64,000 nt of DNA from Eutreptiella sp. 'Long Island Sound 2002' (lineage: Eukaryota > Protista > Euglenida), in NCBI GenBank assembly GCA_964036045.1, contig OZ038378.1:20460001-20524000 (forward strand), written 5' to 3'. The translations under genes were made by a program, and so were the position numbers. The notes under the pieces were generated by a model, which had not been told where the DNA came from, did not search any database, and saw only the letters and a program-made list of their open reading frames with translations. Below, piece by piece: positions 43,786-63,900 of this stretch (within the stretch, counting starts at the first letter, position 1; every line of letters starts with the position of its first letter).

Positions 43786-44679
43786 GCCTCCTATGTTCCA
43801 ATGTGTCCCTGCTCTAGGGGCCTCCGGCTACCACAAGCCTCTGCGGCGGTTGAAAGTTGCAACAGGCGGCCGCCCGTGTGTCTGCCCCCCCCCCCCCCCT
43901 TTGCATATCCCCACCGTCACTTGGTGACCGCCCCCCCTCCCCACCGCCATGCAGGGGACCGTCACGACATTGGGGTTGGGCTATTCAAGGGGGGGGGGTT
44001 CAATCACAGCTCTCCATCTCCTGTGAAAGGCATGGAAAAGTCTGCAGATGAGTTCCAGGCTGTTAGTGGGCCCCTGGAAGCGCCTACAATCCAGCGCATC
44101 TGCACCTCAGAAGAGGTTATTGAGTCTCTTGATCCCGATCCCGCGGATGAGTCTGCATGCATTGGTATGTCTGATTTCGGAGCCGCGAGTGTCCCAGAGG
44201 CTGTCCTCATGGACACCCGGAAGGCCAAGCGGACCACGTCCGTCCGGTTCGACGATGAGGCGTCCATCCTGTTCGAAGATGACGCGGGCCCCAGCCCTGC
44301 GGTTCCCTTGATCCCAGGTCCGTTTGACCCCCCCACGCGCGACGCCAACACCCCCTTCAACACCGTACACACTGTGCGGGCCGCAGTGCGCAACGCCATG
44401 GGCCCGTTCGGCTCGTTCCGGGAAAGGAGCACTATGGGCAGTGCACTGTACGAAGAGTCCGAATCCTTCATCTATAATCCCAGCGGTTCAGTCTCATTCA
44501 GCCCCGCCAGTCTGATACAGCGTCAGGCGTCATACAGGCCGATGGCCCCGAAGGCCGTGGCCCAGCGGCACGTGTGCGTCTCATGACTGATGGGCTGTGG
44601 GACGTTTGGGTGTCTCCTGCTGCTCATGCTGGTGACATTGATGGTGCAGTGGGTGGCGGAGGGCGAGGCCGACCCGGCC

Positions 44680-46440
44680 AAAGTCGAGGTCATACAGAAG
44701 GTCTTGTACGTGGATGGGGCAACGTACTTTGTGCGAGGCGTGAACTACAACCCGATCCCCAAGGACGAGGACGGCACCGCGGAGCCGTACGGGGACTACT
44801 TTTGGATGCCATATGTGTCGTCCGGCTGGGGGCCCAAGTCCATCTCGTACCTGTACACAGCATCTGGGAGCATCTGGGAGGGGATCAAGAACAAGGTCTC
44901 AGGGTATAGCAGCTGGCACAAGGTTCACCTGGAGGAGATTGCCAAGACGTTCAACACCATCCGGATCTACAGTTGGCAACTCGGCAATGAGCACACGGAC
45001 TTCCTGGACATGTGCCACTCCTTGGGCCTGAAGGTCATTGTCACTTTTCAGGTGTAGTTTCCGCAAGAGCCTACTGGTGCCTGCGGGGGGGGGGGGGAGA
45101 AAGGGACAACGGGTCACGGAAGGGAGCCCAGACCTCCTCAACCGAGAGGTTGATGGTCACAGACAAGCATGTGACATACCGGGGGCCCATTGTAGACCTG
45201 GTCTTCCTCCTCGATGGAGGGGAGTAAGGTCGGGGCGTGGTGGGCCAACACGAGGCAGTGGCCTCATTGCCGGTGTCACCGGAGGGGTGGGGGTTGGCAC
45301 GAGGCCATAGTAGTAGTCTGCTTTCCTTTGGCGGCGCCTACTGGCCTCTCGCCACTGAACAGTCCGACCCTCTGTGGGTTCGAACTTGGTCTGGTTGTGT
45401 CAACAGAGCCCCTGGATGATTTGTCCTGTGTGACTACCCTGGGGTCGGCTATCCCAGAGATGGGCCGTTGCCCGTGCCATTGACCAGGTGCATCCAGATG
45501 CACACTCCGAGTCCATGCTGAGCCTGCCGACTCAGGTATGGACCTGTGCGCACCGGTGTGTGCGCGCCGGTGTGTGCACCCGCTGACAGGGGCTTGTAAC
45601 ACCCACAATGATTCGTCCCCTGGTTGTTTGTTCCCCTTCTGTTGTGCTCTGCACCGTTTTCGGCGAGTGCGGTCTGGCCTGCCCTTTTTCATCTGGTGCT
45701 CCCCTTTCCCCTGGTTCTTCTGGGTCCTCCCTGTTGTCCCCGACCGGGGGTATGCTGTAGGGTGGGGGGGGCGTGTGTTGCGCCGTGGGGTGGGTGGGGG
45801 AGGGTGGTCCATGGCAGGGGGGGGGCGTGTGTCGCGCCGGGGGCTGGGTGTGGGAGGGTGGTGGTGGGGGGGTTATATCCATTCGTCATGTGCAGATGGA
45901 CACCGCATTGTACAAGGACCTGTCCGACGAGGACACCATCGCCGAGGCCTTGAAGAACTTCCGGCACATGGTCCGCACGTACAAAGGCTCCCCAGCCATT
46001 CTGATGTGGGCCATCTCCAATGAGCCCAATTCGCAGAGCAACGGGACTCGTACGCCGTCGCCTCGGCGTTGGGGCGGTTCTTCTACTTCCTGGAGGCGAT
46101 TGCGGAGGTGCGGGACGACGAGGAGAGCTTCGGACCGTACTTCCCACACCCGCTGCTGGTGCCCATGGCTGACGAAAACAGTTGGGCAACGGAGGTTGCG
46201 ACGTATGACCATGCGAGGCACGAGGTATGGGGCGTTCAGGCGTACCGGGGCTCCAGTTTCGGGGATCTCTTTTCCAGTTACAGCAGCGACAAGCCACTAC
46301 TGGTTTCCGAGTACGGGATGGACGCATACCTGGACACCACCTCCGGCAGGAGCATTGAAATCCATGACACAAACGCGGAGCTGGGGGTCGACTACCAGAC
46401 CGAAGTCGTTCCCGCGCTCGCGAAGGAGATCGAGGCGGCG
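44680..46440 (+). other. Clan GH-A (GH2/GH72/GH158-like) TIM barrel, N-terminal part
   Basis: YFVRGVNYNP, FNTIRIYSW, LGLKVIVTF, MWAISNEPN (acid/base Glu) and LLVSEYG (nucleophile Glu). Confidence 0.8.
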
Positions 46441-47069
46441 GACTCGCGCCGCAACACCACGTGGTTCACGGCCACGACTCTGCTGCGGGGGGACTCCCCG
46501 GACAGCGGCGGGGGGTACGCCGTGATCGAGTACAACGACTACTCCCGATACCTGAGGTACACGATCTACCACCGAACCTTCACGGACGGCTCCATCAGCT
46601 ACAGCATGCCCGGGGGGCTGTTCAACACCAGCTCCAGTTCTCAGTGGTCGTCCGACACCGTGGTCCTTGATGGCATGTCGGAGGAGGAGGTTAACACCAC
46701 CTCCGACGATGCAGAGTACCAGGTCGCCTCTGGGCTGTCGCTGTGCTCCGCGTGGAACGGCGAGTCCATCGGCACCTGCTACAACATCTCCGATATCGAC
46801 GGCGTTGCGCAGGAGCTGGTCGACGCGTTCGGGGGCGGGGATTGTGCCGTGGATTGGGCCTGCGCGGCGATCGCCACGTGCTACTTCAGCGCCAATGAGC
46901 GCCACTGGTGTGCCTGGACCAACAAGTCCGTCTGTGAGGACGCGTTCAACGGCTGTGACGTCACGCACGCCCCGTCCCCGGACTATCCCACGTCCTGGGC
47001 GGACACCGTGGAAACCCCGGAGACGCTGAGCAGCTGGTTCGACGGTGACACGGCCTCAGATGCGCTGAC

Positions 47070-48280
47070 GAAGACGGTGAACGGCGAGACGCTAACGCTG
47101 GTGTTCAGTGACGAGTTCAATGAGGAGGGCCGTGACCTGGGCCCCGGCAAAGACGCCAAGTGGGAGGCCGTGGACCTGCACTACTCAGCGACCGGTGACG
47201 ACGAGATATATAAACCGAGCGGCGTGACGGTCAGCGGCGGCTATGCGTCCATCAAGTTCGAGACCAACACGACGTATGACCTCGATAACACCGAGAAGGA
47301 GTTCAAAACTGCTATGCTGCAGGGCTGGAACAAGTTCTGCTTCACTGGGGCCTACCTGGAGGGGAGTATGAACCAGCCAGGGAAGTCAACCACGAGCGGT
47401 GTCTGGTCGGCATTCTGGACCCTGGCCAACCTGGGCCAGGCCGGATACCTGGACAGCACCGCCGGGATGTGGCCCTTCACCTACGACCACTGCGACACGG
47501 TGGCGAGTGAGGGGCAGGCGTCCTGGGAGAACACGAACCTGGATGCCCAGAACTTCAGCGCGTGCGGGGATTTCAATGCGGAGTACGGCTTCCAGTCGCA
47601 CGTGGGCCGTGGGGTGGCCGATGTGGATGTGTTCGAGCTGGTGGTGCCTCCGAGCTGGTACAATGCCGAGCGCGGGGCTCACCTCTCAACGTCGCTGCAG
47701 CTCGGCCCGAACATCCCCCAGAACACGACCCACGGTGCTGGCCTCACGGGCAACTGCGCCAACATTTCGGACACGTGCACCGGGATATACTTCTACCAGC
47801 ATAACGGTCACGACACCGGGATGAACACGTGGTGCATGCAGCCCGGGTACCCCAGTTCGGAAACCGTCGATATCCTGGGCAACGAGCTGCAGGATTGCAT
47901 CTCAGCGGAGAGCGACGTCTACGACGAGCACTTTGAAGAGCAGCACACGTATGGCCTATGGATCGAGCCTGGGGAGTGGGCCGCATGGTACCTGGATGAC
48001 GTACTCCTGTTCAATGTCACCAAAGACGCGCTCACCAATAAGACCAACCCGAACAACTCCAGCGAAGCGGTTGGCAGTCGGCAGGTGCCTTACGAGCCCA
48101 TGTACATCATCCTGAACATCGCGAGCTCCAACAGCAACTTCCTTCCTCGTGACCCCAGTCTAGAGCTCCCGGTCTACATGCATGTGGATTGGGTGCGGCT
48201 CTACCAGAACACGGACCGGCACAGCGTGGGCTGCGACCCCACAGATTTCCCGACAGAGTCGTACATCAATGCCAACCTGG
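47070..48280 (+). other. GH16 KRE6/SKN1-like beta-glucan synthesis-associated domain
   Basis: LVFSDEFN, WEAVDLHY, MLQGWNKFCFTGAYLE, WSAFWTLANLG, GRGVADVDVFE, PYEPMYIILN and MHVDWVRLYQ. Confidence 0.88.
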
Positions 48281-48399
48281 ACAAGTTCAAGACCAGTCGG
48301 TGTGGCAACGGCCAATGCGAATCCGGGGAGTGCGAGCAATGCCCGCGTGACTGTCAGTACCAAGCGGCCTGCCGGCAGGATTGCCTGGTGCCGCGATGT

Positions 48400-48860
48400 C
48401 AGATGCTTGACGGCAATTTGACAACTCCGGCCGCGTACTGGCTGTTCCAGCTCAACACCGACAACAGCCCCACTACACCCGTGGCGGACGTGGACTGGCA
48501 GCCTGGCACCGATTCAATGCTCATCAACATCACCGAAAGCGGGTCCTCCGCGTACCTTATCGCCGTATCGCAGAGCCGGCAGCTTCTGTGTCAGAACTTC
48601 CGGTACCGCGTCAACGTCACGGCGCGCTCACTGAATGGCACCGGCGGCTTCACTGTCGTGGTCAATGGGGGCTCTGCCAATTCCTACGCAGACCTTCTCC
48701 CGGACGCGTTGAACGCGACGTTCACGTCGACGGACTCTGTGACCGTCTCTGAGGACTTCGAAGTGAGCTCGCGGTGGGAGAGTGGGCAGGTGGCGATCCA
48801 ATTCGGGGCGCAGGGCAACGACAACACCGTCATTGAGCTCCAGCAGGTGTCGCTGTGCCC
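48400..48860 (+). other. CBM4/9-like carbohydrate-binding module
   Basis: AVSQ...YRVNVTARS...FTVVV...F...VAIQFG...VIELQQVSL follows the CBM_4_9 beta-sandwich pattern. Confidence 0.6.
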
Positions 48861-49809
48861 GATCCCATCGCGAGCGCAGATGTGCGGGCTCGCCCCACAT
48901 CAGGCGGCCTCCACGGCGGACGCCGCCTTGACCAAGGGGGACAGCCGGGTGACAGCCGGGTGACAGCCGAGGATACCACGACTGGGATGCGGGCGTTTGG
49001 AGTGCTGGAGGTGGTCCATGACTCGGCTCCAACGCACAGCGCGTATCTGGCCTCCGATACCGCTCGCAGCCAGAGTTCGGCCGACGCGGGCGTGAACGGT
49101 CGGGCCTATTTCTGGGTGTGTTCGACCACCAGCACCGCCACTACCACCACGTCCAGCCGCCGGAATTTGATCCAACGCCGGGCCAGCGCTCAGTGGCAGA
49201 CGGTAGGCACCGGGACGGGGAAGGGTCGGCGGGCCCATGCGAACAGGCGGGTCTCTGGCCCAGGGGCACCGCACGCGGGCGAAGCCACACAGGGACACAA
49301 CAGCGCGCCTGCCTCGCAGGCTGGCACTCGAAGCACCTCTGTGAGGGACACCACCACCACCACCACCACCGAGTACTACTCTGTGGACTTTCTGGTGGTC
49401 CACGCCGCGCCATGGTTCGAGAGCGGCGCCATGGTGCAGGCCATCGCGCTGCATCGCACGGACAGCGGGTCCGACGCGCTCCAACCTCGTCGCCCCATTG
49501 TATTGCAATGCAGATTCCTCCAGCACCACCAGCGACGGAGACGCGATGGTGCTGAACTGCAGCGAGTGGACCACGGCCGACCTGCCCCTTGATGGCAGTC
49601 CCACGACCCTCGACAACTTCACGTCCACGCTGACCGTGACGTCCACGAGCGTGGCATACCAGGCCATTAACCCTCTGAGGGGGACCATCCTGCTGACCAC
49701 GGAGGAGTACGAAGAACTGGACGGCGAAGAGCTCTACGCCATCATGTACATGGAGGACGATGCTACCGCGTACGGCCGCGCGCGCGGGGTCGTCAGGTCG
49801 CATGCGCAG

Positions 49810-50070
49810 GCCTCGTGCATCGGAGGGCTGGTGTTTGAATACTCCGACGAGTGGTGGAAGGGCGGGAACGACACGTACCATTTGGACTGCTACGATGACA
49901 ACGCGAGTTTCCAGTCGCCCTGTGGCTCCAGCTCCGACGGGTTCGGGCCCGACGGTCGTCTGAACGAAGAGTTCTTTGGGCTGTACAATATGTCGGTGGA
50001 GAGCGAGGCGCCGTATCGAATCACCATGACCGCGCGGCCGGCGGTGGCCGCGTTGCAGGAGTTGTGGGGC
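49810..50070 (+). other. Clan GH-A barrel, C-terminal strands
   Basis: CIGGLVFEYSDEWWKG and LNEEFFGLY are typical final barrel motifs of GH2-like proteins. Confidence 0.75.
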
Positions 50071-51078
50071 ATCACGAGCGCCGGCACGGCAACGGCCTCG
50101 CGCCGGGCCTTTCTGCAGACGACCGACGACATCTTCGCCGCTGTATTCCCCAACTCCGTTTGGGATCTGCTTTCCGACGCAGAGGGGCTGGTCCTGCTCG
50201 GCATCCTGACTTTCCTCATTGTCCTGGGCACTACGCTGCCGCTCCTCTGGTCCATGTTGCAATCTCCCAAGCCCGAGAGGGTGGGCCCTCAACCGATCAC
50301 TTTGACGTACCGCCTCAGCGACGGGGACATGCGGCGAAGCAGAAGTGCCATCCTGGACAACAAAGGGGAGGTGCCGGAACACGAGGTCCCCACCGTGAGC
50401 ATGACCATCACGCATCGCAACCTGCACGGCCTGGGCCCTGTCGAGCTGCTGCGGTCGGACGCGGACAGTGACGTCGCATCGACAGTGACTTCGCGTTACG
50501 TGGAGCTCCGGCAGTAGGTCCGCTCGCTGGCAGGGGTGTTCTGGAGGTGCCTGTCCACAGACACGGAGCGGGACTTTCTCATACGCGATGTGGTGCTGCC
50601 GGAGATCCAACGGCTCGGAGAGGGCAAAGCGATCGCGCGGCTGGACGCGCTTTCCGATGCACTGCAGTGGCCCGACCGATACGAGCCATGGCACGGGCAG
50701 CTGTTGCTGCTGCTGGCGGACTACCCACAGGCAGTGGAGGTGGACGTGGAGCTGACGCGCGTCCGCATTAAGGACGCCGCCGCAGAGACCCCAGAGGAGT
50801 GGATCGAGGTGGAGGGGAGCATGTTCATTGTGCGGGCCTACATGCGCCACGTGCGACAGCAGCTGAGCCGCACCGCACGCCACGAGGACCAGATCTTGGA
50901 CTGGGCGGCGGAGGCGGACTTCGAGAGTGCCTTCAACACCTTCGATGCCGAGGCCCTGGACCGGGCCTGTGAGCGGCTGTTCCGCCTTGTCTGCCCCACT
51001 GAGGTGGCCCTTGCGGACTGGGCCCCCCCAGACTTCCACACGGGAGACGCCCCCAAGTGCTACGACTACGCGGCCCTG

Positions 51079-51092
51079 ACGGTGCTCTTCCT
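51079..51092 (+). repeat. 14-bp target-site duplication ACGGTGCTCTTCCT (partner at 58987-59000)
   Basis: Exact direct repeat flanking the LINE. Confidence 0.97.
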
Positions 51093-51481
51093 TTTTTGCA
51101 CTGAACGGCGCCTTTTGTGGCTGGCCAGGCCGGGGAGAAAGGCTCTTGCGCGCCAAGCTTTTTTGGGGAGGGGCGGGAGCCCGAAATCAAGTTCAATCGC
51201 GGGCTGAGTACCGCTGCACGTTGCTGTCCTCGTCTGCTTCATCTCAAAGAGACTTGGCAGCCCCGTTATAGACAACCGCAGGCCGGGGTCTCCGCTTGAT
51301 ACCCGAAGGCGGTGTGGTTGCGGATTGGGGGTTAGAGCATGACGGCTTGAGCACGGGGGGTGGCTTGGGGGAGGGATTCATTTGCAGAAGTGACTGGTGA
51401 GTGCCAGTGTGGTAGTACTGATTGATCGCGCCGCTAGGGCTGTCGAGGGTCGGCGTGAGAAAATGTGTAAGTGTGGCTTTT

Positions 51482-54400
51482 TCAAAGAGATGACACGTTG
51501 GACGAGTGTGAGGACGATTGTGAGTTTGTACTCGCGGGGGAGGGGGGGGCTGGTGCGAAGTACCTTGTTATGCGAGGAGAAGGGGCGGAAATGGGGGCGG
51601 AGGCGGCGAGGGGGGGTGCTGGTCTAGGGGGGGGGGGGAGGTTGAACATGTCCCTGATTGTGAGCGGCCGTTTGGGGGGCGGAGGCTCTGGCTGGGGTTG
51701 ACTTGCGGTACCGCGTTTCAGTGATAGAGGCCGGACGGGCCTTGGGGGCTGGCGGCCGTGTTTTCGAGTTTTGGTGTGTGCCGCAGGAGATGGGGGGCGG
51801 GGGCGTTTTGGGGGCTTGTGTGCAACTTTGTCCGGGAGGGGGGGGGGAGGGTGGTAGGCGGGGGGGGGGCGTTGTTGGGCGGTGTGCGACGTGCTGTAGG
51901 GCGACCAGGGGCGTCCCCATGAGTTGGGGCCCGTAGGGGGGGTGAGCGGGGCTGGGGGGGGGTGGTCTTTTAGCCATTCCAGCGTGCGGTATAGGGCGCT
52001 GAGGAGCAGGGGAACACGATCCTTCAGGGCGAGTTTTAAGTCGTGACAGTGTGCTGGTTTTCTTCGGCCGGAGGGGGGGGTTGTGAGTTTGGTGTACAGC
52101 GTCATGGGAACAAGCCCCCGGACGAAATTGCGTCTCTCCCCCACGTGTGTGGTCGCGGACCACCATTGGGACACCACCGTGGTGAAGGGGGGGCGCCAGC
52201 ATTGAATGTAGGATTGGACCAGGTGTTCGCACGTTGGGCAGTGTGAGACGAAAGAGATAACATCCATCGGGTGCGGGTCGGGGCAAGCGTGGCAATGGCG
52301 AGGGCGCAAGTCGTCGTGGAATGCAAATGGCGCCATGTTGAAATTTCCGGAGGACCATTTGAAAGGGAGGCCTTTGAACCACGTAGTGTGATTGTAAAAG
52401 TGGAAGCTGGACGGTGCGTGGATGTTTTCGTGTTTGTGGCGAGGGAGGAGATGCTTGATTGAGGTTGTAGTCAATTTGTGTATGACTGGGAGGGGGCCCC
52501 TGGATATGCACCCTATCGGGGGGGGGGGAAGGAGGGAGGGGTCCCAGACCATCACGTGGGCGGCCCACTTTGAGTAAGCATCTGAGATTTCATTCCCCAC
52601 GAACCCGGCGTGCCCCTTGATCCACCCCCAACCCTGGATCATCCCTGGGCGTAGGGAGGCCTGAATGGACTGGAGAGAGGATTCCCACGTGCCGGCTGGC
52701 GAGCGTGATGGGAGGCCTGGGGGGGTGTTCGGAGAGAGAACAGTGATAACGTGGAGGTTGTCCCCTAGCACGGCGAAGGTGAGGTGCGGGTGAGATGCAA
52801 GGGCCCACCGTAGGAACATAATAGCGGCCCAGAACTCCGATCCCTCTGATGACTGGTACGGGGACGTTTGGCACAGTACCCATCTGGAGCCATTTGGAAA
52901 AAACAGGGTGGCCGCCGATCCGTAGCCCAAGGCGCCCGCTGAGCCATCCAAGTACACCCATGTCGTGCCGGGGGACGATGCGAGGAGGAGGGCAAGGGCT
53001 GCTTCACAACCCCATTCTTCGAGGTCGTCGGGGTCAAGGGAGTGAGGTTCATCTGGGAGCCGGTACAGCTCGCCATGCAGTGACGAGTCGAGTAGGACCC
53101 CGCCGTATGGCCCGGGGGGGGGGTTGAGGATGTATTCTTGAGGGTGAAGAAGGGGGGGGGTGAGCAGTTCGTGGCGCCCCGCCAGTTGAGGGAGGACAGA
53201 AATGGCTGGGTTTTGAAAGGTGTATTCTTTCTCGTTGCGGCGGAGACCGGGGTTTTTGATGGTGTGGGTGGTGTCGTCCGAAAACTGGAGTGTGGCCGAT
53301 TCTGAGTGCACTTCCGTGACTGTACCTAGGTGGAACCCCAGGTCCTGGGGCGTCCGTTTTAATCTGTTGCCGAACTTGCTGTATTGTGGTGCCGGCTTGG
53401 TGGCTAGGAACCGGACCTGGACTTTTTCTTTTGGGAGGAAAAGGGAGGGGGGGCAGGAGGCCCAGAGGCCGGTGCTGTGGTATCGGAAGCCTATGGCGTG
53501 GCATGCGTCCATGATGGTGTCTTGGATTGGGTTGCGTGTGGTGGAGAGCATTGCTTCGGAAAAAGATTCGTTTGTCGAGGCCGGGCCGTCTCCGTTGAGG
53601 TACCTTATTGCGGTGTTTACCAGGGCCATGCAAATTGAAAAAGTGAAGTGGCGGAGTCCTAAGCCTCCCTGGTGGCGAGGGGTGTAGCGGGCCTTAGGGG
53701 AGACGAGGCGGGAGATCCTGTTGGCTCTGTCCGGGGAGGGGTCATGCGCAACATTTTGCCAGATCATGGCCTGAAGGGCCCCCAACTCGTTCAGGGCCAG
53801 GGGGTGTGCCATGAGGCGGTAGGAAAGAATAGGGATGAGTTGGACGTTCACCAAGAGAATGTATTCCGAAAGGGTGAGCTGGAGGGGTTGGAGGGTTGTG
53901 AAAAATGAGCGTATTTCCGACTTGGCCAATGCCAGTGTTTGTGCCTCATGGTTGGCGGTGAAGATGTATACCCCTAGGTATTTGTAGCAATTGTGTGGTT
54001 GCCCCGTCTTTCGGTTTGTTGTCGACAGGGGGGTGCCCGAGGGGGAGGTGAAGGTTCTGGGGGGAGCTGTTCCCATAGCGTGGATCTCGGTTTTGCTGAG
54101 GTTAAGGTCTAGACCCCACTCCCTGGCGACCGTGTCGAAGAAGTTTAAAACTTGCTGTATGCGGTCCCCATTCTCTGATCGATAGAGGAGGTCGTCAACA
54201 AAGGCGTGGCCCGATTCGTGTGGGGAGGGGGGTGCAAGGGGCGTAGGAAAGTTCAGGCGGGATAGAACTGTGAAGAGGGTGGTGTGGGGGACGGAGTTAA
54301 AAGCCTTATTGAAATCAATGTAGAGGCTGTAGCTACCGACCGATTCCCGAAACGTGGATAAGAGGTTGAAAATGTGGTCCTGGCATCTGCGGTTCGGAAG

Positions 54401-56221
54401 CCCGCCGAACTGGGTGGGGTGTATGATGGAATGTTCAATGGCCGCTGCCAGTAGCTCTCGGTTGGCGTGTGTTGCAATTATTTTGTAAACGCTGTTCAGC
54501 AAGGCTATAGGCCTGTAATTTACCGGGTTCATCACGTCCCCTTTCTTAAAAAGCAAGATAATGTTGGCTTCGAGCCATTTCTCGGGCAACGGCCGGTGGA
54601 GGTAGTAGTTGCATACCTTCCAAATGAATTGTTGGATAGGGGGGGGGGAGACGTGCAAAGTGTAGTTGTTTGTGAAGTCCCGCCCCCCCGCCTTGTTGGG
54701 CTTGGACCTCTTAAGCGTGTTGCGTAACGATTCCTAGGTAATGTCAGGGAGGAGGCCGTGTTTTGTGGGTTCGGGGCAGGCGGGGGAGTGTGCGAGTAGG
54801 CGATCCACTAGAGTGTTCGGCGGTGCGTATTCGAGGCTGCCCCCCAGGGTGAGGAGTGTAGAAGAGAAAATAGAGCCCACTTCCTTGGGGGTGGAGACGA
54901 GCTGTGTGGTGCCCGGGCGCTTCAGCGTTATTTCACCTCGTTCCACGGGGTTGAGCGCCTCGTTGATGGTGCGTTTGATCCTAGTTTTCCTCACTAGGCA
55001 CCGATGGATTTTGGTGGTTGCGGCCTTGTTCACTTTGGTTTCCCACTCCTTGACGAGTTTGTTGAGCGTGTCCATGGAAGCGGGGTAGTTGGGATGGCTG
55101 GGGGGGGGCAGGGTTTGCAGGGACTCTTTGATTTTCTTTACCAGAGCCGAGGAGGTAGGGCGTGACGGCGTGGTGATACTGTGGTAGCTGGTCGCCACTT
55201 CCTCCAGCACGACGTCTGTGAAAAGCTCGATGTCCGCCGAGGACAAGGACTCAAAGCGGGGGAGGGTAGACTCGCACCACCGCGCCAGGGGGGCAAGGGA
55301 GTCGTGGTGCTTGGAGCGTTCCCGCTCCGTCAGTTTTCGGAAAACTTTCCTCTTAGTTGTGGGAGCTTCGGTAAAAGGGTGAGGGGGGACTTGAGAGGTG
55401 TACGTGACTGGGTGGTGGTCTGACGTTTTGTCGTCGGTTTGGATGGTTGCAGAGGTGGGGGCAAAAAATTCCGAGGCCGCCGGGGAGAGCAAAATATGGT
55501 CAAGGCGGCTACTGCTTGCCCTGTACGGGGTGGGGTATCGGGAGAAGGACCGCTCGGTCGGGTGAAAGTGCCGAAAGGTATCGATGAGGCGCGGCGGGTC
55601 GCTCGTGATCTGTCTGCGAAGCCACGGCCATTCGTTGTCCGTTTGGAGGTTCGATCCGTCTAGTTCAGGGCACATTATGCAATTGGTGTCCCCACCGAGG
55701 ACGTGGTTAGGATACTGATGCATGAGTGGCCGTAGGATGTTTTCAATTTTTGAGCGGTGGACGTCCGTGCTTGGGGCGTATACCGAGACCAGCAAGGTGG
55801 GCGGGGCCCCCGGGAGAGTGAGAACGGCTGCCGCCAGCATCCCTTCTGTATCTAGTCGGGGAAGGGGGGTAACGAAGCGGGAGAGCCGGGGGGAACAGAC
55901 CAAGACGGAACCATGCTCGCCTCTGGAGTGTTTGTCTTGGCTGATATTCGAAACGATGGTGGCTTTAGTGCCCGAACCGTAGGCGTATACGTGGGGGAGG
56001 ATGGGGGCGTGATTGATTTCTTGGAGGAAGAGGATGTCGAAGTCGTTCTTGAGGTGTCGGAGAATTTGGCTGCTCACTATGGGTTTCTTCTGCAAGTTGT
56101 GGGATAGAAAACGCAGTTCTGAAGGGAGGGGTATGGGGGGGCGGTGAGGCCGTTGGTAACCCTTCCGTAGGCGCGTTTTGGATCTCGGGGGGGGCGGGAT
56201 AGGGGGGGGCTGGGGGGGCAC
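51482..56221 (-). pseudogene. LINE ORF2: APE endonuclease, RT, RNase H, C-terminal Cys/His knuckle; one in-frame TAG (54736-54734) and an in-frame deletion in RT
   Basis: APE: FLSHN, FLQE, GGDTN, SRLDHIL, SDHHPV. RT: NYRPIALL, DFNKAFNSV, AFVDD, YKYLGV. RNase H: YLDGS, SEFWA, GDNL, WIKGHAGFVGNEISD. The QGCPLSP motif is absent. Confidence 0.92.
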
Positions 56222-56438
56222 TGGGGAGCCGGGCTGGCTGGGCTGGCTAAGGCAAAGAAAGTGCTGAATTTGGTCGGCCGGTATCCCGGCCGAGGTGAGC
56301 TCGTCGTCTAGCCCCTTGCCTGTGATGGTGGAAGCCGTGACTGGGCCGGTGGTTCACTGAATCTTGGCCCTTTTGTGTTCAGGTAGAGGGGGCTGGACAG
56401 TGCAGGGGGCGGGTACCCGGCCCTCTGGCTTTCGTGGG

Positions 56439-58763
56439 TTAGCTTGCCTGTGGTATGTGTCGGAGGATTAGAGCGAGGCGAGGGACGGTACGAGGGACGG
56501 TTAGCCCAAACACTTCGTCTTCTCTCCGTCGAGGTATACCGTGGTGCCACTCATGGCGTGCGGCCCCCGTGAGGACCAGGAGAGAGCGGGCAAACAGGCG
56601 GATGCGAAAGGAGTCCCCGTTGGAGGGGTTCTTAAAGAACATTGTGGTGTCCGATTGGGAACCAAAAATGGACACTGGGTCGCCTAGCAAGGGGTCGTCC
56701 CCGTGGTAGCCGATGCCCTCTCCCGGGAGATACATTGTGCCCGTGATTTGGTTGGGAGGAGGGTGTGAGAGGCCTAGCCGCTCCAGCGCGGCATTGTAGG
56801 TTTGGAGGATGGAGGAAAACTCTTCCGGGATGGGGGACGTGGCGGCGACTTTGCTCGGGCCGAGGTATGCGTGGCCGAAGTGTTGGACTGAGCGCCCGTG
56901 GTACTTCTCCCACGTGTTGTCGTGGAGAATCTTTTTTACCGTTTCCTCTTGGCTTTCGGAGAATACGTCGCGGACGTAATAAAAACCAGCGGGGAGGCGG
57001 GGGTCGATTTGAATATCCGAGGCGGGGGTGGGGGCACCGTGGTCGGGGGGTAGGAGGGTGGTCGCCTCGCCTCCTAGTGGAGCAAGCAGCGGGACGCTGG
57101 TCTCGGACATCTCTTCGATGCGGCTTGGTCCCGGCGTTGGCGTAGCGGCGCCGGCGTCCTCCGGTGCCGCGTTCCACTCGCTGATGCGCTCAGTCAGCCC
57201 CGTAGCGGGCCTTTCTCGAAGGGCGGTGACAAGTTGGGACACGAAGGCCGTGGACCCCAAGGCGGCTCCCGCTTGGAGGCGCTGCACTATGGGTTGCTCG
57301 TGCTCGGCCACATCCGGGTCTTGAGCGGGGAGGATCTTCTCGAGGGCGATGAGGTTGCGGTGTAGTGGGGCAAAGGCAGCGTCTCCATATTTGAAGTCAT
57401 GCGCTAGCAGCGCGGATTCCCCCTTTTCGTAGACCACGAGGTAGGCTTGTTGGTGTTCGTAGGGAGGCCGCGTGGGCTCGAACGACACGTACGGGCCAAG
57501 AAACCCCGCTTGGACGCGCAAGTCGAGAGCGTGCGCCGATCTTGGGGCCACTAGGAGCACGGCGGTCTTCGGGGCCTTAGATGAGTCGTATGAGGGCGGG
57601 GCCGGCGTCGCGTGGGCTCGCTCGGGGGCGCCCGAAGGCGCGGACCTCGCGTTGCCGTCGGATCGTGACGAGAACCGCACTAATTGCCCATCTATGCCAT
57701 GAAAGAGGACAATGCCGCATGAGTGGAAGAAGCGGATAGCTAACGTTTGGACACCGGTCTTCATGACGTCGCACGGCGCGTGAGTGGTGTCAATCGCCAC
57801 GACCAAGGAATCTTTAGACCGGAACATCGCTCCTAGGGGCGGTGAGGCGCCCCGTCCACCGGGCAGGTTGGCGATCATCATGGCGAGCATTTCCGGAGCT
57901 TGTAGGTCTTTGTTTCTTTCCTTTCGGTCCCTAGCGATCACGGCTCGATACACTTCGGTAGTCGGCAAAGCGTGCATGTCCATTGCAAGGAGTTCTCCGG
58001 TGAGGAATTGGGCGCACTCTCGGACCTTAAACATGAGCTCGTCGGCAAAGCGAGATGGGAGTTCCCAATCAAACCGGTAGTAGGCCCAATGCGGGCTCTC
58101 GGAAGGGACTATGTGGCCAAACGGGTAGTAGGCATTTTTGGTGTTCACCGATACGTGTGCTAGCGCGGGGACAAACATTTCGTTCATTAACTTCATGAAA
58201 GCACGGGCGTCTCCAATTTTGCGTTGCCTTGGTTTAGTTTTATCTCTCTCTTCCGGCGGCGAAGGCTCAATGTGATCAAGGAATTCTATGCTCACCTCAA
58301 AACGTAGTCCCGTGTTAGCCCACGGGGTGGCGGTGGGTGGAGACTCCTTGGCTTCGGCTTGGGAATAGTCCAACTCATACGGCTTTAGGTAGAAACGCTT
58401 GTGCTTGAACAAAAGCTTTTCGAGCTCGTTGTAGTTATTGTGCGCAACGGAAGAGACCCTACCTCGATCTAGAATTTCCGTGGAGTTGCTCCCAACGAAG
58501 GCGGATTGAATATCGGTGCCTTCCACATCCAGGTAAAACTCGGAGTAGTCTTGTAGTCGGCGGTAGACTTCGGGAACGAAAATGCGTTGGCGTGTGTCAA
58601 ATATTTTGCCTTCAATGGCTTCAAGTTGGCGTGACGGAAAGCGTGTTTGCAACGGCGAATTTGAGGCTTGGTGTTTTTGAAAGAGGTGTGACGGAGAATA
58701 ATTGAATAGCGTTGAAAGGCCATCATCGGCGGCTTTGGAGCTTCCAAATAGGGTGAAATTCAT
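56439..58763 (-). CDS. LINE ORF1, 774 aa from the first in-element ATG: RRM-like segment and C-terminal AlkB-family 2OG-Fe(II) dioxygenase domain
   Basis: GFYYVRDVFSESQEE...RSVQHFG...PNQITGTMYLPGEGIGYHGD...RSLLVLTGAARHEWHHGI...RLALILR shows HxD, distal His and RxxxxxR intact. Confidence 0.88.
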   Translation of the reverse strand: MNFTLFGSSKAADDGLSTLFNYSPSHLFQKHQASNSPLQTRFPSRQLEAIEGKIFDTRQRIFVPEVYRRLQDYSEFYLDVEGTDIQSAFVGSNSTEILDRGRVSSVAHNNYNELEKLLFKHKRFYLKPYELDYSQAEAKESPPTATPWANTGLRFEVSIEFLDHIEPSPPEERDKTKPRQRKIGDARAFMKLMNEMFVPALAHVSVNTKNAYYPFGHIVPSESPHWAYYRFDWELPSRFADELMFKVRECAQFLTGELLAMDMHALPTTEVYRAVIARDRKERNKDLQAPEMLAMMIANLPGGRGASPPLGAMFRSKDSLVVAIDTTHAPCDVMKTGVQTLAIRFFHSCGIVLFHGIDGQLVRFSSRSDGNARSAPSGAPERAHATPAPPSYDSSKAPKTAVLLVAPRSAHALDLRVQAGFLGPYVSFEPTRPPYEHQQAYLVVYEKGESALLAHDFKYGDAAFAPLHRNLIALEKILPAQDPDVAEHEQPIVQRLQAGAALGSTAFVSQLVTALRERPATGLTERISEWNAAPEDAGAATPTPGPSRIEEMSETSVPLLAPLGGEATTLLPPDHGAPTPASDIQIDPRLPAGFYYVRDVFSESQEETVKKILHDNTWEKYHGRSVQHFGHAYLGPSKVAATSPIPEEFSSILQTYNAALERLGLSHPPPNQITGTMYLPGEGIGYHGDDPLLGDPVSIFGSQSDTTMFFKNPSNGDSFRIRLFARSLLVLTGAARHEWHHGIPRRREDEVFGLTVPRTVPRLALILRHIPQAS

Positions 58764-58958
58764 GGTGTTTTCGGGATGAACGAAAAGGTGGCTTGGCGTC
58801 AATTGAAAGATTGCGAGCGTGGATTTGAACTCGGGAATTGAGATGATGATTTGAAAACTGCGGGAAAGGCTCCAGAACTTGAACAGCCCAGGATTTTCTC
58901 CAATCACCGAATAGCCTGGACTACTGGTGGATCCATCAACAAAATGCTGAGGGTCAAT

Positions 58959-58984
58959 CGAAAAAAAATAGACACTCAGAAAGT
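58959..58984 (-). other. Euglenid spliced-leader exon ACTTTCTGAGTGTCTATTTTTTTTCG, retroposed at the LINE 5' end
   Basis: The reverse complement of cgaaaaaaaatagacactcagaaagt is a 26/26 match to the Euglena SL as I recall it. It is followed by ATTGAC rather than a GT donor, so it is not an SL RNA gene. Confidence 0.93.
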
Positions 58985-61253
58985 GAACGGTGCTCTTCCT
59001 CGCAGTGCAACAGTTCTGTGAGAACCTGCGCCAGTCCGGCATCTTCAAGAAGCGGACATGGCAGTACCTCGCTGCGGCCCTGCCTACGGTTGATCCAAAC
59101 GCCCTGGACGGCAGCAAAGCGCCGTGGGTCGGCTTCCGGCGGCGCTGCGTTGGCGTGCGGAAGCTCCTGCGGCTCCTGCTGACAATGGTCGACAAGGACG
59201 TGATCAACTTCGCTGACGTGGACGACATCTTCAGCCGCACCACCGTGGACGGCCCCACGCAGGAGGACGGGCACAAGATCCCGATGTATGTGGAGCCGGA
59301 GCCCCAGGGTTTTCAGTGGTGTATACCGAGGCGCCGCCTCCCGCCAGTCCGCAACTACGACGAGCTCGTCCCGGGGCAGGCCGTGGGCCATCCCGCAGCC
59401 TTGGCTGAGACCTTCCGCAAGACGTACTGCGAGGCTGTCAGCAATGGTACGCTGCTGCGGCTGTTCTTCTTCGTGTTCCACGCGCACGCGCTGCTCTTCC
59501 TCGTGTGCCTAATGCTCGACACCCGCAATGTCCGCTGGGAAGTCGCGTTGTGGGTACTCAGCGTCTTCGAGGCCGGTGCCACAACACCGCCCGCGGGTGC
59601 GCCATCATCGATTCGGACTGGATGTGCTACCCGGGGGTCATCGTATTCTACTTCGTGATCTTCCTGTCGCAAATGATGGTGACAACCATCCTCTGGGTGC
59701 TGATCTCCATGCTCTGGGGCCTGTTCCAGGGGGTGAAGAAGTCCGTGGGGGCCATCGGCAGCTGGAAGAACGTGCAGCCCTCGATGGACGTCCACCACCA
59801 GCAGATGATTCTTTACACCCCCTTCAGCAATACGGCCCGCTGTTCGCCAACATGCGGCTCCTGGCCCTGCAGCACTGGGTCCACCTGTGGCACTGGGACT
59901 TGATCGGAAAGGACGCCCTCCGGGAGGCCTGCAACTGGCGGTTCCTGAACCCAACCTCCGAAGAGGGCCGGGTGCTGACGCTGGGACACCTCAACGGCCA
60001 CATGGGCCTGTTCTCCTTCGTCTACGGCAGCCAGCACACGGGGGCCGAGCGCAAGCGCATCTCCCACGCCGTGCAGTGCATCTTCAGCATGCGGGCCATT
60101 ACGTATATGGTCCCCGTGTACAACGAGACGGTGTGATACACTTGTGGCGTCCTCAAAAAGGACTGCACCCTCGAGCACCTGATCACGCTCTACCCGGAGG
60201 AGTGGGAGAACTTCTGCGAGCGCACGTTCTACGGCGTGCACCCTGACGAAGTCAGCAAGGCCTTCTTCGCCAAGGGGCAGGCACTCGCGAAGCTGTTCAT
60301 CGACGCGCGGGCCCCGCACATCGCCGCCGTGTGGCAGCGGCTGCGCTCGTGGCCTCCGACCGGGAAAGGCACCCTGTGGACCTCGAAGCTGACGGACTAC
60401 CCCGTGAACATTCGGGACGTGCTACTTTCCGCACGATCCCCCCCCCAGTATCCCGCCGGAGTATGCGACGACGTCTGCCCCCCCCAAGCAGCAGGCAGAG
60501 CTGCTGCACCAGGTCGAGTTCTGGGCACAGCAGCAGGTGCGGTGGTGGGCCACCATGCGGGGCCAGACTCTGGGGCGGACCCTCCTCGGGCTGATGGAGA
60601 TGCGCGAGGCGCTGGTGGACGTGGCGTACCTGGAGCTGAAGACGGTGCACAGCAAAGGCTTCCTCGACGTCGACTACCACAACCCGTCCTCGCGGTGCCG
60701 CTACGACGACGTTCTTGCATGGCTCCAGCGGAACCGCTACCACCTCTTCAATCGGCGGGCCAACGTGGCGAATGCCATATTCTTCGACCCGGAGGACATG
60801 ACGTTGCTGTGTCCCGAGCGGGCTCTGCACAAGGGCCTGTCCCACAGCTCCGCGCTGGCCGTGGTGGTGTGCGCGGAGCTCGCGTGCGCGTGCTTCCTGG
60901 AGCAGTACGCGCTCCAGACTGCGTTCGGGGGCCGCGGGTCGGCCTATGAAGTGCTGATGGCGAAGGACAAGACCGGGGAGTTCGTGCTGCCGTACCTCGT
61001 GTCCCCGAAGATGAACCCGCACCCGGACACGCCCGAGGAGTTGCTGGGCCCCGACGCAGAGCCGCAGCTGCGGCAGGCCCTGGGGCGGTTCAGTGAGGCA
61101 CTGCATGAACTGGAGGAGGCCAATCGGTTGCGCACCAAAGCGGAGCAAGTCGTGGCCGACAAGTTCCAGGTTCTGGTGGGGGCCCAGGTCTACGAGGAGC
61201 AGAAGGCCACGTACACAGAGATCAATGAGTGCCTCGCGCTGTGGAAGCTGCGT

Positions 61254-63900
61254 TGCAATGCCGGTGGTCATGTGCATGGTTGTTCCCCTTGCCGTAGCAG
61301 ACCCAGCAACCGTGGTGCTGTGATCCATACTCGTGGAACGAGAGCGGCGGGTTTCTGATCCTCCGCGGTTCCCTGCGGTTCTTGGTCCTTGGGTCCAGGC
61401 GGTTCCACCTGGACCTGTCCTGCCCATGCTCCTTCATATTGTGCGCTACGAACGCGAAGAAGTGGGCTTCTTCTTGATCCTCTCGGGTGGTCGCGGTCCA
61501 GAGATCTTGGCCGCTTCCACTCCCTTCCTCCGCGGTGCCGACCGTGTCCCCCTTGACCTCTCGGTGTTGGCGATCCCCCCGATGACCTCGATGTCCTTGG
61601 CCCTGTCGATCCTGCACGTGGGCCTCGTTCTTGGCGATGAGCTTCAGCTCCACCGTGATGTACTTCACAATCTCGTCCAGGCTCATGCGGGCGAAGATGA
61701 CCTGCATCCTAAGCGGCTCTCCGCGCCTCCACTCCGCGTTGTTGAGGCGCATCAGCCTTTGCTTCATGGTGTCGCCGAATACCTCCACGTAGACGGCTTT
61801 CTTCAACCCCAACATTCGGCTGGGCTCGCCGAGGTTTCGCCGGAAGAACTCCATTATTCCGGCGTGGGTGTCCTCCGAAGCCATGATCCGTACAGCGTTT
61901 GCTCTCTTCTTTTCCTCGTCCTCCACTCTCCTCTTCCAGTGGCCGGGGAGGATGTCCTTCAGCAGGTGTCGGATCTCGCTGGCCTCATTCCAGTCCTCCA
62001 CCAGCTTGAGGCTTCTTCGGTACTTGCGGATGTACCGATTCCATTCCCGGACCCGCAGCTCACCGCGCTCCAGCGGCAGCGGAATGGACCACAAATCCTC
62101 CAACTTCTGGTTGGGGGCGTCCACTTGCTCCTCGTCCTCCAGCCACTGGAGGCAGGCCTGCTCCGTCTGGATCAATCCCTCGCGGATCTGATCCCTGAGC
62201 TCCTCCTTCAGGTCCTGCGCCAGCCTGTTTGGGAATGTCCGACATACCCACTTGTCCCTTGGCGCTCCCTTCATCTCGCCAACGACCTCCTCGGCGAAGT
62301 CCTCCCAATCCAGGTTTAAGTCATCCAGGTTGGAGGGGTTGCCATCGTAGTAGGGGATTTTGATTCCCCTGAGGTCGTCAATCCTGATGGCGTATCCGAC
62401 GTCCGCAGCCACCACTCCACCGAGACGGATACCACCTGTGGCCGGGGGGTGTGAGTACACTCCCCGTACATCCCTCTCCTCCATGGAGTGCGTTCCAGTT
62501 TGGCCTGAATCCATGGGGTTTGGGATGCGGGAAGGACTTGCTTCACCGGCTGTCCATATTCCCGTAGTGGGGTCTTTCACCCAGTGGTTTCCGCCTGGAT
62601 GGCCTCGACCATGTCCGTCGGCCCTTCCCATGGTTCGCCCCTGCATGGTCTGGATCTCATCTTCCGCATAAACTGCATGGGCAGTTGAGTGGTCGGTGGA
62701 TCCTGAGCGGCATGGGACATCTGTACCGTCAGGCTCCTCAGGTCCGTGGTTGCGTGCTCTTCCCGCATGGACCCAGCCGGTGCCGTATGTTCCCCGAGCA
62801 TTATGGATTCGCTGAACATGGGAACAAACGGCAGCGCACCCGGGTCAACACGCGGAGGCGCGTAGGGTGCCTCTGCAGGGCCGCCCATGGGTTTCTCCAT
62901 GGTGCTCCCGCTCCACCAGCTCTGCCGTTGCCGGCCTTGCCGGGAGCTCCGGACCCGAGGCGAGGGGTTGTAACTCCTCTAGCCTTTTCAAGCGTCCCGA
63001 CATGTCCTCCACCAGGTGGAGGAGGCTGTCCACCACTCGCTGCTGCTTCTGCAGGGCCATCTCCAGCTTCTCCCGGTACCGGTCCTGCTCCGCTCGCAGC
63101 TCCGCCATGTCTCTCTCCGCTTCCGACTGGTCATCCAGGATCCCCGCGATGTTCTCCTCTAGGCCGTCCTTCTGGTGCTCCAGGCGGTCGAGGTGCTGCA
63201 CGATGGCGTCCATCCCCATTTTTGGGTACTTGCCGATGAGGAAGGATACGTGCTCGCAGTGGCACTCAACGTGCTTTCCACCTGATCCGGCGCATCCCAC
63301 GGTTCCCGGCGCCTCGGACTCCTCCGCCATGGGTGTGTCGCCCATGTTATCCCGCGTTGGCTCCGTGTGCCGGGCCACAGGCGCCGTTCAGGCTCTGGTA
63401 GGCCTCTCCAACGCCTCGGCGTCATGCTCCACGCTGGGTTCGGGGGCCGTTTGCGCCCTGGTGGGCGGTATGGCCATCTCCTCCGACTCCGAAGGGAAAG
63501 CGGTCCGATAGCCATCGGAATGCCCCTCGGAATCTGCAGCTGACCACAGCCTGACCGGGCTGGGATCCGTCTCCATCGCCCTGGCTTCCGCCGCGGGTTT
63601 CGGGGACCCGCGCTTCCGGTAACGCCGGGCCCTACCGTTGCTGCCAGTCTCCTCCAACTCCTCCGCAGTGGAGCAGAGATTGCAAGCCTTGCGGCATTGC
63701 CTTTCACACATGGAGGCCAGGTCCTCCATGTCTAGCCCATGTCCTACAAGGGCTCTCCGTCCTGAGCATCTTCGCTCTTCTCGGGCTTCCCAGTCCGGCC
63801 TCGACTCCACGGACTCCACGCTCTGCACCCGGGGCGTCCTTGGGCAGGGCTCATGAGGGCCCAAGTCCCCGGTGCGGCGGTAGGGGGCAGGTACCCCTCT
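61254..63900 (-). mobile_element. Decayed gag-like ORF of an LTR- or DIRS-type retroelement, truncated at its zinc knuckle
   Basis: Coiled coil (LEHQKDGLEENIAGILDDQSEAERDMAELRAEQ), capsid-like IPYYDGNPSNLDDLNLDWEDF, knuckle CWVCYGKGNNHAHDHRHC. In-frame TGA at 63390-63388 and frameshifts; no pol seen. Confidence 0.65.

Follow-up and report, generated by a model that had tools for sequence, protein, structure and literature searches.

On the plus strand of a 64,000-nucleotide stretch from Eutreptiella sp. 'Long Island Sound 2002' (contig OZ038378.1; the whole stretch is called the window below), we found coding pieces related to the euglenid glucan-synthase-like (GSL) family at positions 44032-61253. 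With a probability of almost nine in ten we read this stretch as a unitary-looking pseudogene of that family, whose intact members are single polypeptides joining glycoside hydrolase (GH) modules to a GT48 beta-1,3-glucan synthase. The window copy is broken, disrupted by a long interspersed nuclear element (LINE) and truncated, and such a polypeptide cannot come from it. The original prediction, made from the sequence of the window, had described one polypeptide of about 2800 codons that becomes continuous when one intron and the LINE are removed. The open pieces it named exist in the plus strand from 44.0 to 61.25 kb, and after removal of both elements they sum to ~2797 codons.

Structure of the locus

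Two relatives serve as references below. The 964-aa open reading frame (ORF) at 46069-48963 was the query of an exhaustive HMMER search, which found a 3294-aa protein of Eutreptiella gymnastica (UniRef A0A7S1JEU0, here P0003), a transcript-derived, unreviewed entry named 'GH16 domain-containing protein'. The second reference, L001, is a near-intact, intronless 11-kb gene in the ENA assembly ERZ25074135 (10001-21017). It consists of two abutting ORFs of 1648 and 2025 aa (L001A and L001B) with a single frame change just after the second transmembrane (TM) helix. Both ORFs are colinear with all of P0003, KRE6 is present and L001B matches Glucan_synthase at 7.6e-74. Amino-acid identity between the window pieces and their paralogues is 40-50%.

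The gene begins with an open frame at 44032-44583, followed by an in-frame TGA (44584-44586), one Leu codon and an ATG at 44590. This frame had been proposed as a cytosolic N-terminus. It showed no detectable homology to the tails of paralogues (BLASTP against the N-terminal ORF of the paralogue L002: best E 2.1, not significant), and the TGA cuts it off from the first TM helix. The stop is either the first lesion of the gene or lies just upstream of the true start. Exon 1 (44590-45051, frame 1) encodes TM1 as a signal anchor (44605-44655) and the start of a clan GH-A barrel (YFVRGVNYNP...), and aligns with residues 124-253 of the homologue P0002 (tblastn, 49% identity, 1e-35). The single GT-AG intron of the original prediction lies at 45052-45895 in phase 0 and joins ...VTFQ to MDTALYKDL...; the exon join reproduces the contiguous L001 sequence VTFWMDRNLYPDL. 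An intron at this position also occurs in L002, and L001 and a further paralogue, L003, are without it. Within the intron, a repeat at ~45200-45600 is of very high copy number, with a unitig depth of 1.5e4-1.5e5 compared to ~25 in exons and unique sequence, and an 83%-identical inverse copy is found at L002:5686-5907.

Exon 2 starts in frame 2 (45896-46039) with barrel strand 4 and the acid/base motif WAISNEP (46007-46027). After a frameshift at 46040-46050 (frame 2 to 1) follows the long frame 1 segment at 46051-48957. It contains the barrel nucleophile motif LLVSEYG (46297-46317) and then, in order, the first half of a beta-rich domain, a Cys-rich linker, a GH16 domain of KRE6/SKN1 type (~47032-48288, motif GRGVADVDVFE at 47605-47637), an EGF-like Cys-rich linker and a sandwich resembling carbohydrate-binding module family 4 (CBM4; ~48427-48864, assigned from an AlphaFold2 model and Foldseek). 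The frame is next shifted from 1 to 3 at 48940-48970, where the 11-nt unit GACAGCCGGGT is present in tandem, twice in full (48940-48961) and a third time in part. The frame 3 segment at 48963-49455 encodes the second half of the beta-rich domain (YFW...VDFLVVHAAPWF...AIALH) and includes an expansion of ~231 nt (49116-49376) that the homologues do not have; an explanation as an intron was rejected as unnecessary because the expansion is open in frame and of low complexity.

Another shift (49456-49475, frame 3 to 1) leads into the segment at 49476-50514, which aligns with P0003 residues 929-1495 (tblastn, 1e-64) and carries the barrel end GGLVFEYSDEWWK (49822-49860) followed by RLNEEFFGLY, the second TM helix (TM2, 50188-50250, from hydropathy) and the start of a cytosolic linker. 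An in-frame TAG (50515-50517) interrupts the linker, which continues in frame 1 to 51092 (50518-51092) and had no Pfam match at E<=5. Beyond the LINE, frame 1 resumes at 58987-59571 with a conserved cytosolic region and the first helix of the synthase bundle (59452-59517), matching L001B residues 279-480 (tblastn, 46% identity, 2e-40). A deletion breakpoint with a shift from frame 1 to 3 follows at 59571-59577, where ~130-148 residues of all four homologues are gone; in L001B the lost part (residues 481-610) contains two predicted helices. The remaining pieces are a frame 3 segment with membrane helices (59577-59825; helices at 59634-59726), a shift to frame 2 at 59826-59840 and a frame 2 segment at 59837-60457 from the GT48 N-terminal region (AERKRISHAVQCIFSMRAITYMVPVYNETV at 60044-60133; L001B 707-922 by tblastn), which is interrupted by an in-frame TGA (60134-60136). 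A shift from frame 2 to 3 with a small deletion (60458-60488) leads to the last segment at 60489-61253, with the GT48 motifs WATMRGQTLGRT (60546-60614) and KFQVLVGAQVY (61161-61193) and 50% identity to L001B (tblastn). Homology ends at 61253, corresponding to residue 1187 of the 2025 residues of L001B.

Lesions, the LINE and the missing synthase core

Altogether the window copy carries three in-frame stops, at least six frameshifts, the LINE, the deletion of ~130 aa and the 3' truncation. The predicted frame had been called lesion-bearing, and this was correct, although the lesions are more numerous than the wording suggests. Neither the intact ORF nor the expression that mark euglenid GSL proteins were found for this copy.

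The LINE (51093-58986) lies on the minus strand within a coding exon of the plus-strand gene and is itself a lesion. It codes for a reverse transcriptase, an RNase H, an apurinic/apyrimidinic (APE) endonuclease and additionally a 2-oxoglutarate-dependent oxygenase (Pfam RVT_1, RNase_H, Exo_endo_phos and 2OG-FeII_Oxy_2). As predicted, it is bounded by a target-site duplication, the 14-bp sequence ACGGTGCTCTTCCT at 51079-51092 and 58987-59000, and removal of the element together with one duplicate restores ...YDYAALTVLFLAVQQFCENLRQ... in frame 1. At its 5' end (58961-58986, minus strand) the LINE matches the Euglena spliced leader ACTTTCTGAGTGTCTATTTTTTTTCG exactly over all 26 nt, directly next to the target-site duplication; this suggests a trans-spliced mRNA as the template of the element. 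At its 3' end, unitig depth reached ~8e4. A small contig from a run labelled 'RNA?' (X4) joins the spliced-leader-like sequence TTCTGAGTGTCTATTTCTTTTCG to 39 nt of the LINE 3'-end repeat (window 51092-51130); its leader differs from that in the LINE by one T-to-C change. The window ORF was absent from the contig collection searched, and repeats common to the window and ERZ25074135 were only ~77-83% identical.

The GT48 part has lost more than the original prediction stated. Homology in the N-terminal region was clear (tblastn with L001B, P0003 and the GT48 protein P0152, 1e-125 to 1e-134 summed), and the motifs ...RISHAVQ...VPVYNETV..., WATMRGQTLGRT and KFQVLVGAQVY are retained. The Pfam Glucan_synthase profile scored 30.3 bits on the window (~60.5 kb; cut-off 37.2), covering profile positions 128-168 only, and the catalytic core (profile ~173-741) and the C-terminal membrane bundle are absent. 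Since the homology ends at residue 1187 of L001B and the Pfam core spans residues 1141-1732 there, nearly the whole catalytic core is missing, and tblastn found no further GT48 sequence anywhere in the window. The C-terminal membrane region had thus rightly been described as lacking, but most of the core has gone as well, and of the claimed GT48 catalytic domain only the N-terminal edge is left.

The truncation point is adjoined by the 3' end of a gag-like ORF on the minus strand (61222-62646, 474 aa), which has a CCHC knuckle (CWVCYGKGNNHAHDHRHC), no Pfam hit and no relation to GSL. No pol follows it. The juxtaposition of a gag-like 3' end lacking pol with the end of GT48 suggests that a deletion or rearrangement took both pol and the remaining synthase.

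We next consider whether the lesions are real, as a functional fused gene would be expected here if they were assembly errors or were spliced out as nonconventional introns, with the LINE as an intron. Nonconventional introns are abundant in Euglena (PMC12501133), and the pieces are still as conserved towards their paralogues as given above. Unitigs of three sequencing runs (X1-X3), however, cover 45695-51119 with zero mismatches and zero gaps. Their depth is flat at ~25, ~9 and ~40, respectively, and rises to 1e4-1e5 only in repeats, which identifies the runs as genomic DNA and not RNA. The supported spans include 45695-46440 and 48762-51119 and reproduce the frameshift and the 11-nt duplication without differences. 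The exact match of the unitigs shows that the DNA really carries the frameshifts at 46040 and ~49460 as well as the 11-nt duplication and the TAG at 50515; the runs may derive from the assembled sample, so that this agreement rules out consensus error and leaves room for individual variation. Moreover, an 11-nt tandem duplication, shifts of 1-2 nt and point stops are not intron-sized, the 130 missing residues are beyond explanation by introns, the catalytic core is absent, and the LINE interrupts a run of codons with a target-site duplicate on either side. A functional gene at this locus is therefore extremely unlikely.

Several points weigh against a pseudogene. The lesions of the GT48 half (59.5-61.3 kb) are known from the assembly sequence alone. 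The locus was found in no RNA run, which is weak evidence as the RNA data available for the species consisted of three tiny runs from 2013 labelled 'RNA?'. The rest of GT48 could lie beyond the end of the window if the gag-like element were part of a large insertion and not the scar of a deletion. A truncated product of ~200 aa could still arise from the ATG at 44590 up to the first frameshift. Continued use of the decayed gene, for instance to make a regulatory RNA or a truncated piece of the luminal GH module, would fit with this ATG, the good signal anchor after it and the intact GT-AG intron, as well as with a GH16 region that retains WSAFW and D-x-D-x-x-E. The frameshift at ~46040, on the other hand, ends the frame about 200 codons past the ATG and before the barrel nucleophile, and the small RNA runs gave no evidence of transcription. 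We regard such use as even less likely than a functional gene.

Fusion of hydrolase and synthase modules in the family

While the window copy is best explained as a pseudogene, the coupling of a luminal GH module and a beta-1,3-glucan synthase in one protein is real at the family level. P0003 carries PF03935 at residues 220-636 (2.8e-69) and PF02364 at residues 2374-2945 (3.4e-63). By tblastn it aligned with the plus strand of the window in six blocks in strict order, with E values from 0 to 1e-36: residues 3-860 at 46408-48957, 929-1495 at 49420-51105, 1487-1690 at 58987-59577, 1838-1919 at 59577-59822, 1938-2139 at 59840-60400 and 2168-2417 at 60486-61253. Also colinear with the window were P0153 (EP00668_P002959), a 2930-aa protein from a Euglena longa transcript with a GH2_C-like barrel and GT48, and P0152. 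Colinearity with these three proteins places the fused reading frame far beyond chance. A search for intact paralogues or orthologues and euglenid transcripts had been proposed as a check of the original prediction, and P0003, P0153 and the near-intact L001 indeed show the fused architecture. The coupling in one polypeptide accordingly holds for the family, as seen in transcript-derived proteins and L001, but not for this locus, a pseudogene without the GT48 core.

The family is present in many loci of ERZ25074135. The closest relative of the window copy is the intron-rich gene L003/L006 (~70% nucleotide identity), which is colinear with L001 residues 200-3128 and comprises at least 15 coding segments, counted as matched stretches, with kb-sized gaps taken as introns. 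Intron positions vary among paralogues, as illustrated by the intronless L001 and the intron-rich L003/L006 in one assembly. L002 and L004 are partial or fragmented.

The fused appearance could also have resulted from decay of two neighbouring genes, one for a membrane-anchored GH/KRE6 protein and one for a separate GT48 synthase. The models P0001 and P0006 are GH-only. Furthermore, the protein P0152 comes from an mRNA-like 6.3-kb contig (JGI 3300042018; L005:38-5512), is 1824 aa long and contains GT48 only. Its first Met lies ~20 residues upstream of the junction between the linker of the fused proteins and the conserved 'LVQQxCENLRQ' region; relative to the window, the protein starts ~20 residues upstream of the LINE site. 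Since this contig encodes GT48 alone, stand-alone and fused forms coexist in euglenid-like organisms. In the window, however, a single TAG is the only break in frame 1 between TM2 and the GT48 N-region, a stretch that includes the linker and the restored duplication, so that the GH module, flanked by a TM helix on either side, and GT48 lie in one continuous frame. The linker is moreover homologous to that in the single transcripts of P0003 (residues 929-1690) and P0153. Two separate genes are thus very unlikely, and a single fused ancestral gene that has since decayed is the preferred reading.

Topology was assessed on the intact homologues. Hydropathy of L001 indicated a tail of 98 aa, TM1 at residues 99-117, 1468 luminal residues and TM2 at residues 1586-1604, followed by the helix-bearing synthase. 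N-x-S/T sequons occurred at 1.16 per 100 aa in the luminal part and at 0.1-0.2 in cytosolic parts. This density supports a topology in which the GH modules would be luminal and GT48 cytosolic. The two flanking helices of the original prediction are both present by hydropathy in the window, and its sequon argument for the luminal side is supported, with sequons 5-10x denser between both helices in intact homologues.

Other GT48 architectures were also encountered. P0154, a predicted protein of 4974 aa from a 23-kb ENA contig, contains in tandem two GH-A barrels of the type seen here (PLLVGEYG…IDEYWK…NEEWWG), FKS1_dom1 and a full Glucan_synthase domain, and the barrel-GT48 fusion may thus extend beyond euglenids. 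The P0157 cluster of oomycete GT48 proteins, which includes a Globisporangium polare 'Callose synthase 5', has precomputed sugar-transporter/MFS Pfam domains next to Glucan_synthase and would be another kind of GT48 fusion.

Luminal modules and their possible role

The barrel belongs to clan GH-A, and no defined CAZy family can be assigned to it. The motifs WAISNEP and LLVSEYG find their counterparts in P0153, P0001 and L001 as well as in the GH2 acid/base motifs of solved structures, in agreement with the predicted GH-A barrel. GH2_C scored 18.5 bits on the window piece (~45.9 kb; cut-off 21) and 36 bits on L001A, which is above threshold. Similarity to the GH72 beta-1,3-glucanosyltransferases (Gas/Gel/Phr) and to GH2 and GH158 consists in (beta/alpha)8 features, with NEP after strand 4 and the nucleophile in 'SEYG'. 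The GH72 Pfam matches in homologues remained weak, with 13-25.7 bits below the gathering cut-off of 25.9, and the best relatives of solved structure by sequence were GH2 and GH158 (E 7e-6 to 3.5e-4). The 'GGxVFEY' of the barrel resembles the strand-8 motif of GH72. An AlphaFold2 model of the uninterrupted barrel (P0153:1-620, 8-row alignment) had a pLDDT of 40 and was unusable.

In P0153 the barrel is accompanied by a contiguous beta-rich domain and no GH16. The same domain is split in the window, L001 and P0003 by the Cys-rich/GH16/Cys-rich/CBM insert, which indicates that the architecture is a nested insertion. Its two halves had been termed CHRD-like. Pfam gave no CHRD match at E<=5 on either half, and an Atlas feature search with the contiguous E. 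longa version returned unrelated families at best (0.68), so that this designation found no support.

The KRE6/SKN1 assignment of the GH16 domain was strongly supported by PF03935 on the 964-aa ORF (267.3 bits, cut-off 30; E 2.8e-79; profile positions 96-477 of 501). The motif itself has diverged. The canonical E-x-D-x-x-E, in the context GRGAPEIDxxE, is shared by L003/P0015 with KRE6 proteins from fungi and other sources. It reads GRGAPEVALFE in L002 and GRGVADVDVFE in the window, where the first Glu is replaced by Asp and WSAFW is kept, and both Glu are lost in L001 (GRGVPQVDVFV) and in the expressed Eutreptiella protein P0003 (GRGSPSVDVFR). Because of these losses GH16 is probably a binding module and not an enzyme in at least some of the intact fused proteins, and a remodelling role for it is uncertain. 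The domain might be catalytic in the L003 type and a lectin-like relic in the L001 and Eutreptiella type, judging from the motifs. The best candidate for catalytic remodelling in intact relatives is the GH-A barrel.

The CBM4-like domain was recognised by its fold. The AlphaFold2 model had a pLDDT of 74-94 over the sandwich (residues 60-205) and matched 1gui_A in Foldseek with E 4.9e-10 (TM-score 0.76 by target length and 0.52 by model length). This structure, entitled 'CBM4 structure and function', we take to be the laminarin-binding CBM4 of a Thermotoga laminarinase; CBM4-2 and the CBM4 of CbhA and CelK were the next matches. By sequence, Pfam CBM_4_9 stayed below its cut-off of 25.9 on this region (15.1 bits, E 0.032).

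Fusion of GH and GT48 as such is not new. The Euglena paramylon synthase EgGSL2 combines an N-terminal GH domain and GT48 in one protein, according to a 2017 study as cited in PMC10884871. P0153 is similar: it too is one polypeptide that unites a GH-A barrel, a membrane helix and GT48, it has the barrel motif 'DFLD(L/M)C' in common, and it is probably the EgGSL2 orthologue, as suggested by DFLDLCW (DFLDLCWQYN) in its barrel. Alignment of the window with P0153 extends over the barrel as well as the GT48 N-region. In contrast to the window gene, P0153 has no ~1000-aa insert of Cys-rich, KRE6 GH16 and CBM4 modules, and in contrast to P0153 the window copy is broken and truncated. The original prediction had made its novelty depend on the architecture being undescribed for EgGSL1 or EgGSL2, and as the GH and GT48 fusion in Euglena has already been reported, this claim is lost. 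In the literature covered, which did not include the 2017 study itself or the EgGSL1/2 sequences, we found no account of a KRE6 or CBM4 insert in a euglenid GSL. A0A7S1JEU0 and L001 share the identical nested order and match the window gene colinearly along its entire length with 40-50% identity, but they are intact or nearly so, and their GH16 has lost both Glu while the window retains DVDVFE and WSAFW.

A further parallel is offered by the fungal Kre6/Skn1/Ghs2 GH16 proteins that work together with GT48 synthases, as in the synthase-remodeler complex Ghs2-Bgs3 of S. pombe (PMC13612389). Here too a KRE6-type GH16 on the extracytosolic side is coupled to GT48, but in two separate proteins, whereas the euglenid GH16 is N-terminal and nested within another GH barrel. 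Single polypeptides of GT48 and GH16 are cited for oomycetes and called restricted to them in PMC13612389, as far as that statement goes; the main text of Morris 2009 does not mention an oomycete fusion. Taken as worded there, the restriction to oomycetes does not hold in view of the euglenid proteins. At somewhat less than even odds, we propose that the euglenid genes form a multi-copy, undescribed GSL subfamily of GT48 synthases whose luminal GH-A barrel has a KRE6-type GH16 and a CBM4-like module nested in it. It would be a single-chain counterpart of fungal Bgs3-Ghs2 that arose independently of the oomycete fusion, with a GH16 that is catalytic in L003/L006 and the ancestor of the pseudogene and a glucan-binding pseudo-enzyme in L001 and Eutreptiella.

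We know of no description of how the paramylon chain is handled after its synthesis. A single functional hint comes from the exchange C121S/W122L in the N-terminal GH domain of EgGSL2, which lowers paramylon, so that two residues of this domain are needed for its normal formation (PMC10884871). The predicted synthesise-and-remodel machine would apply to the intact relatives, with the reservation that the GH16 motif is degraded. Intact members, of ~3000-3700 aa, begin with a short, presumably cytosolic tail and the signal-anchor helix, followed by a probably luminal module of ~1450 aa. This module comprises the GH-A TIM barrel with both catalytic Glu and, after strand 7, the beta-rich domain bearing the Cys-rich/GH16/CBM4-like insert. 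A second helix, the presumably cytosolic linker and the GT48 synthase with its membrane bundles complete the chain. The cytosolic GT48 would polymerise UDP-glucose and thread the chain through its membrane channel. On the luminal side the tethered module might bind the emerging glucan via CBM4 and the GH16 cleft, and the barrel, or GH16 where ExDxxE is intact, might then process it. In the window copy, this ability would have been lost through stops and frameshifts, the exonic LINE, the two-helix deletion and the loss of the core at a breakpoint beside the retroelement gag.

The locus itself is a dated relic that documents gene-family turnover and LINE activity, including a LINE capped by a spliced leader. 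The family shows that up to three glucan-active modules (GH-A barrel, KRE6 GH16, CBM4) are tethered to euglenid synthases on the product side. A GH16 that looks catalytic in some paralogues and dead in others supplies concrete constructs with which a coupling of synthesis and remodelling can be tested, and the euglenid family corrects the recent claim, as cited above, of GT48-GH16 fusions in oomycetes only. What may be new here is the variant architecture with its nested KRE6/CBM4 insert, on the background of the GH and GT48 fusion already known from EgGSL2.

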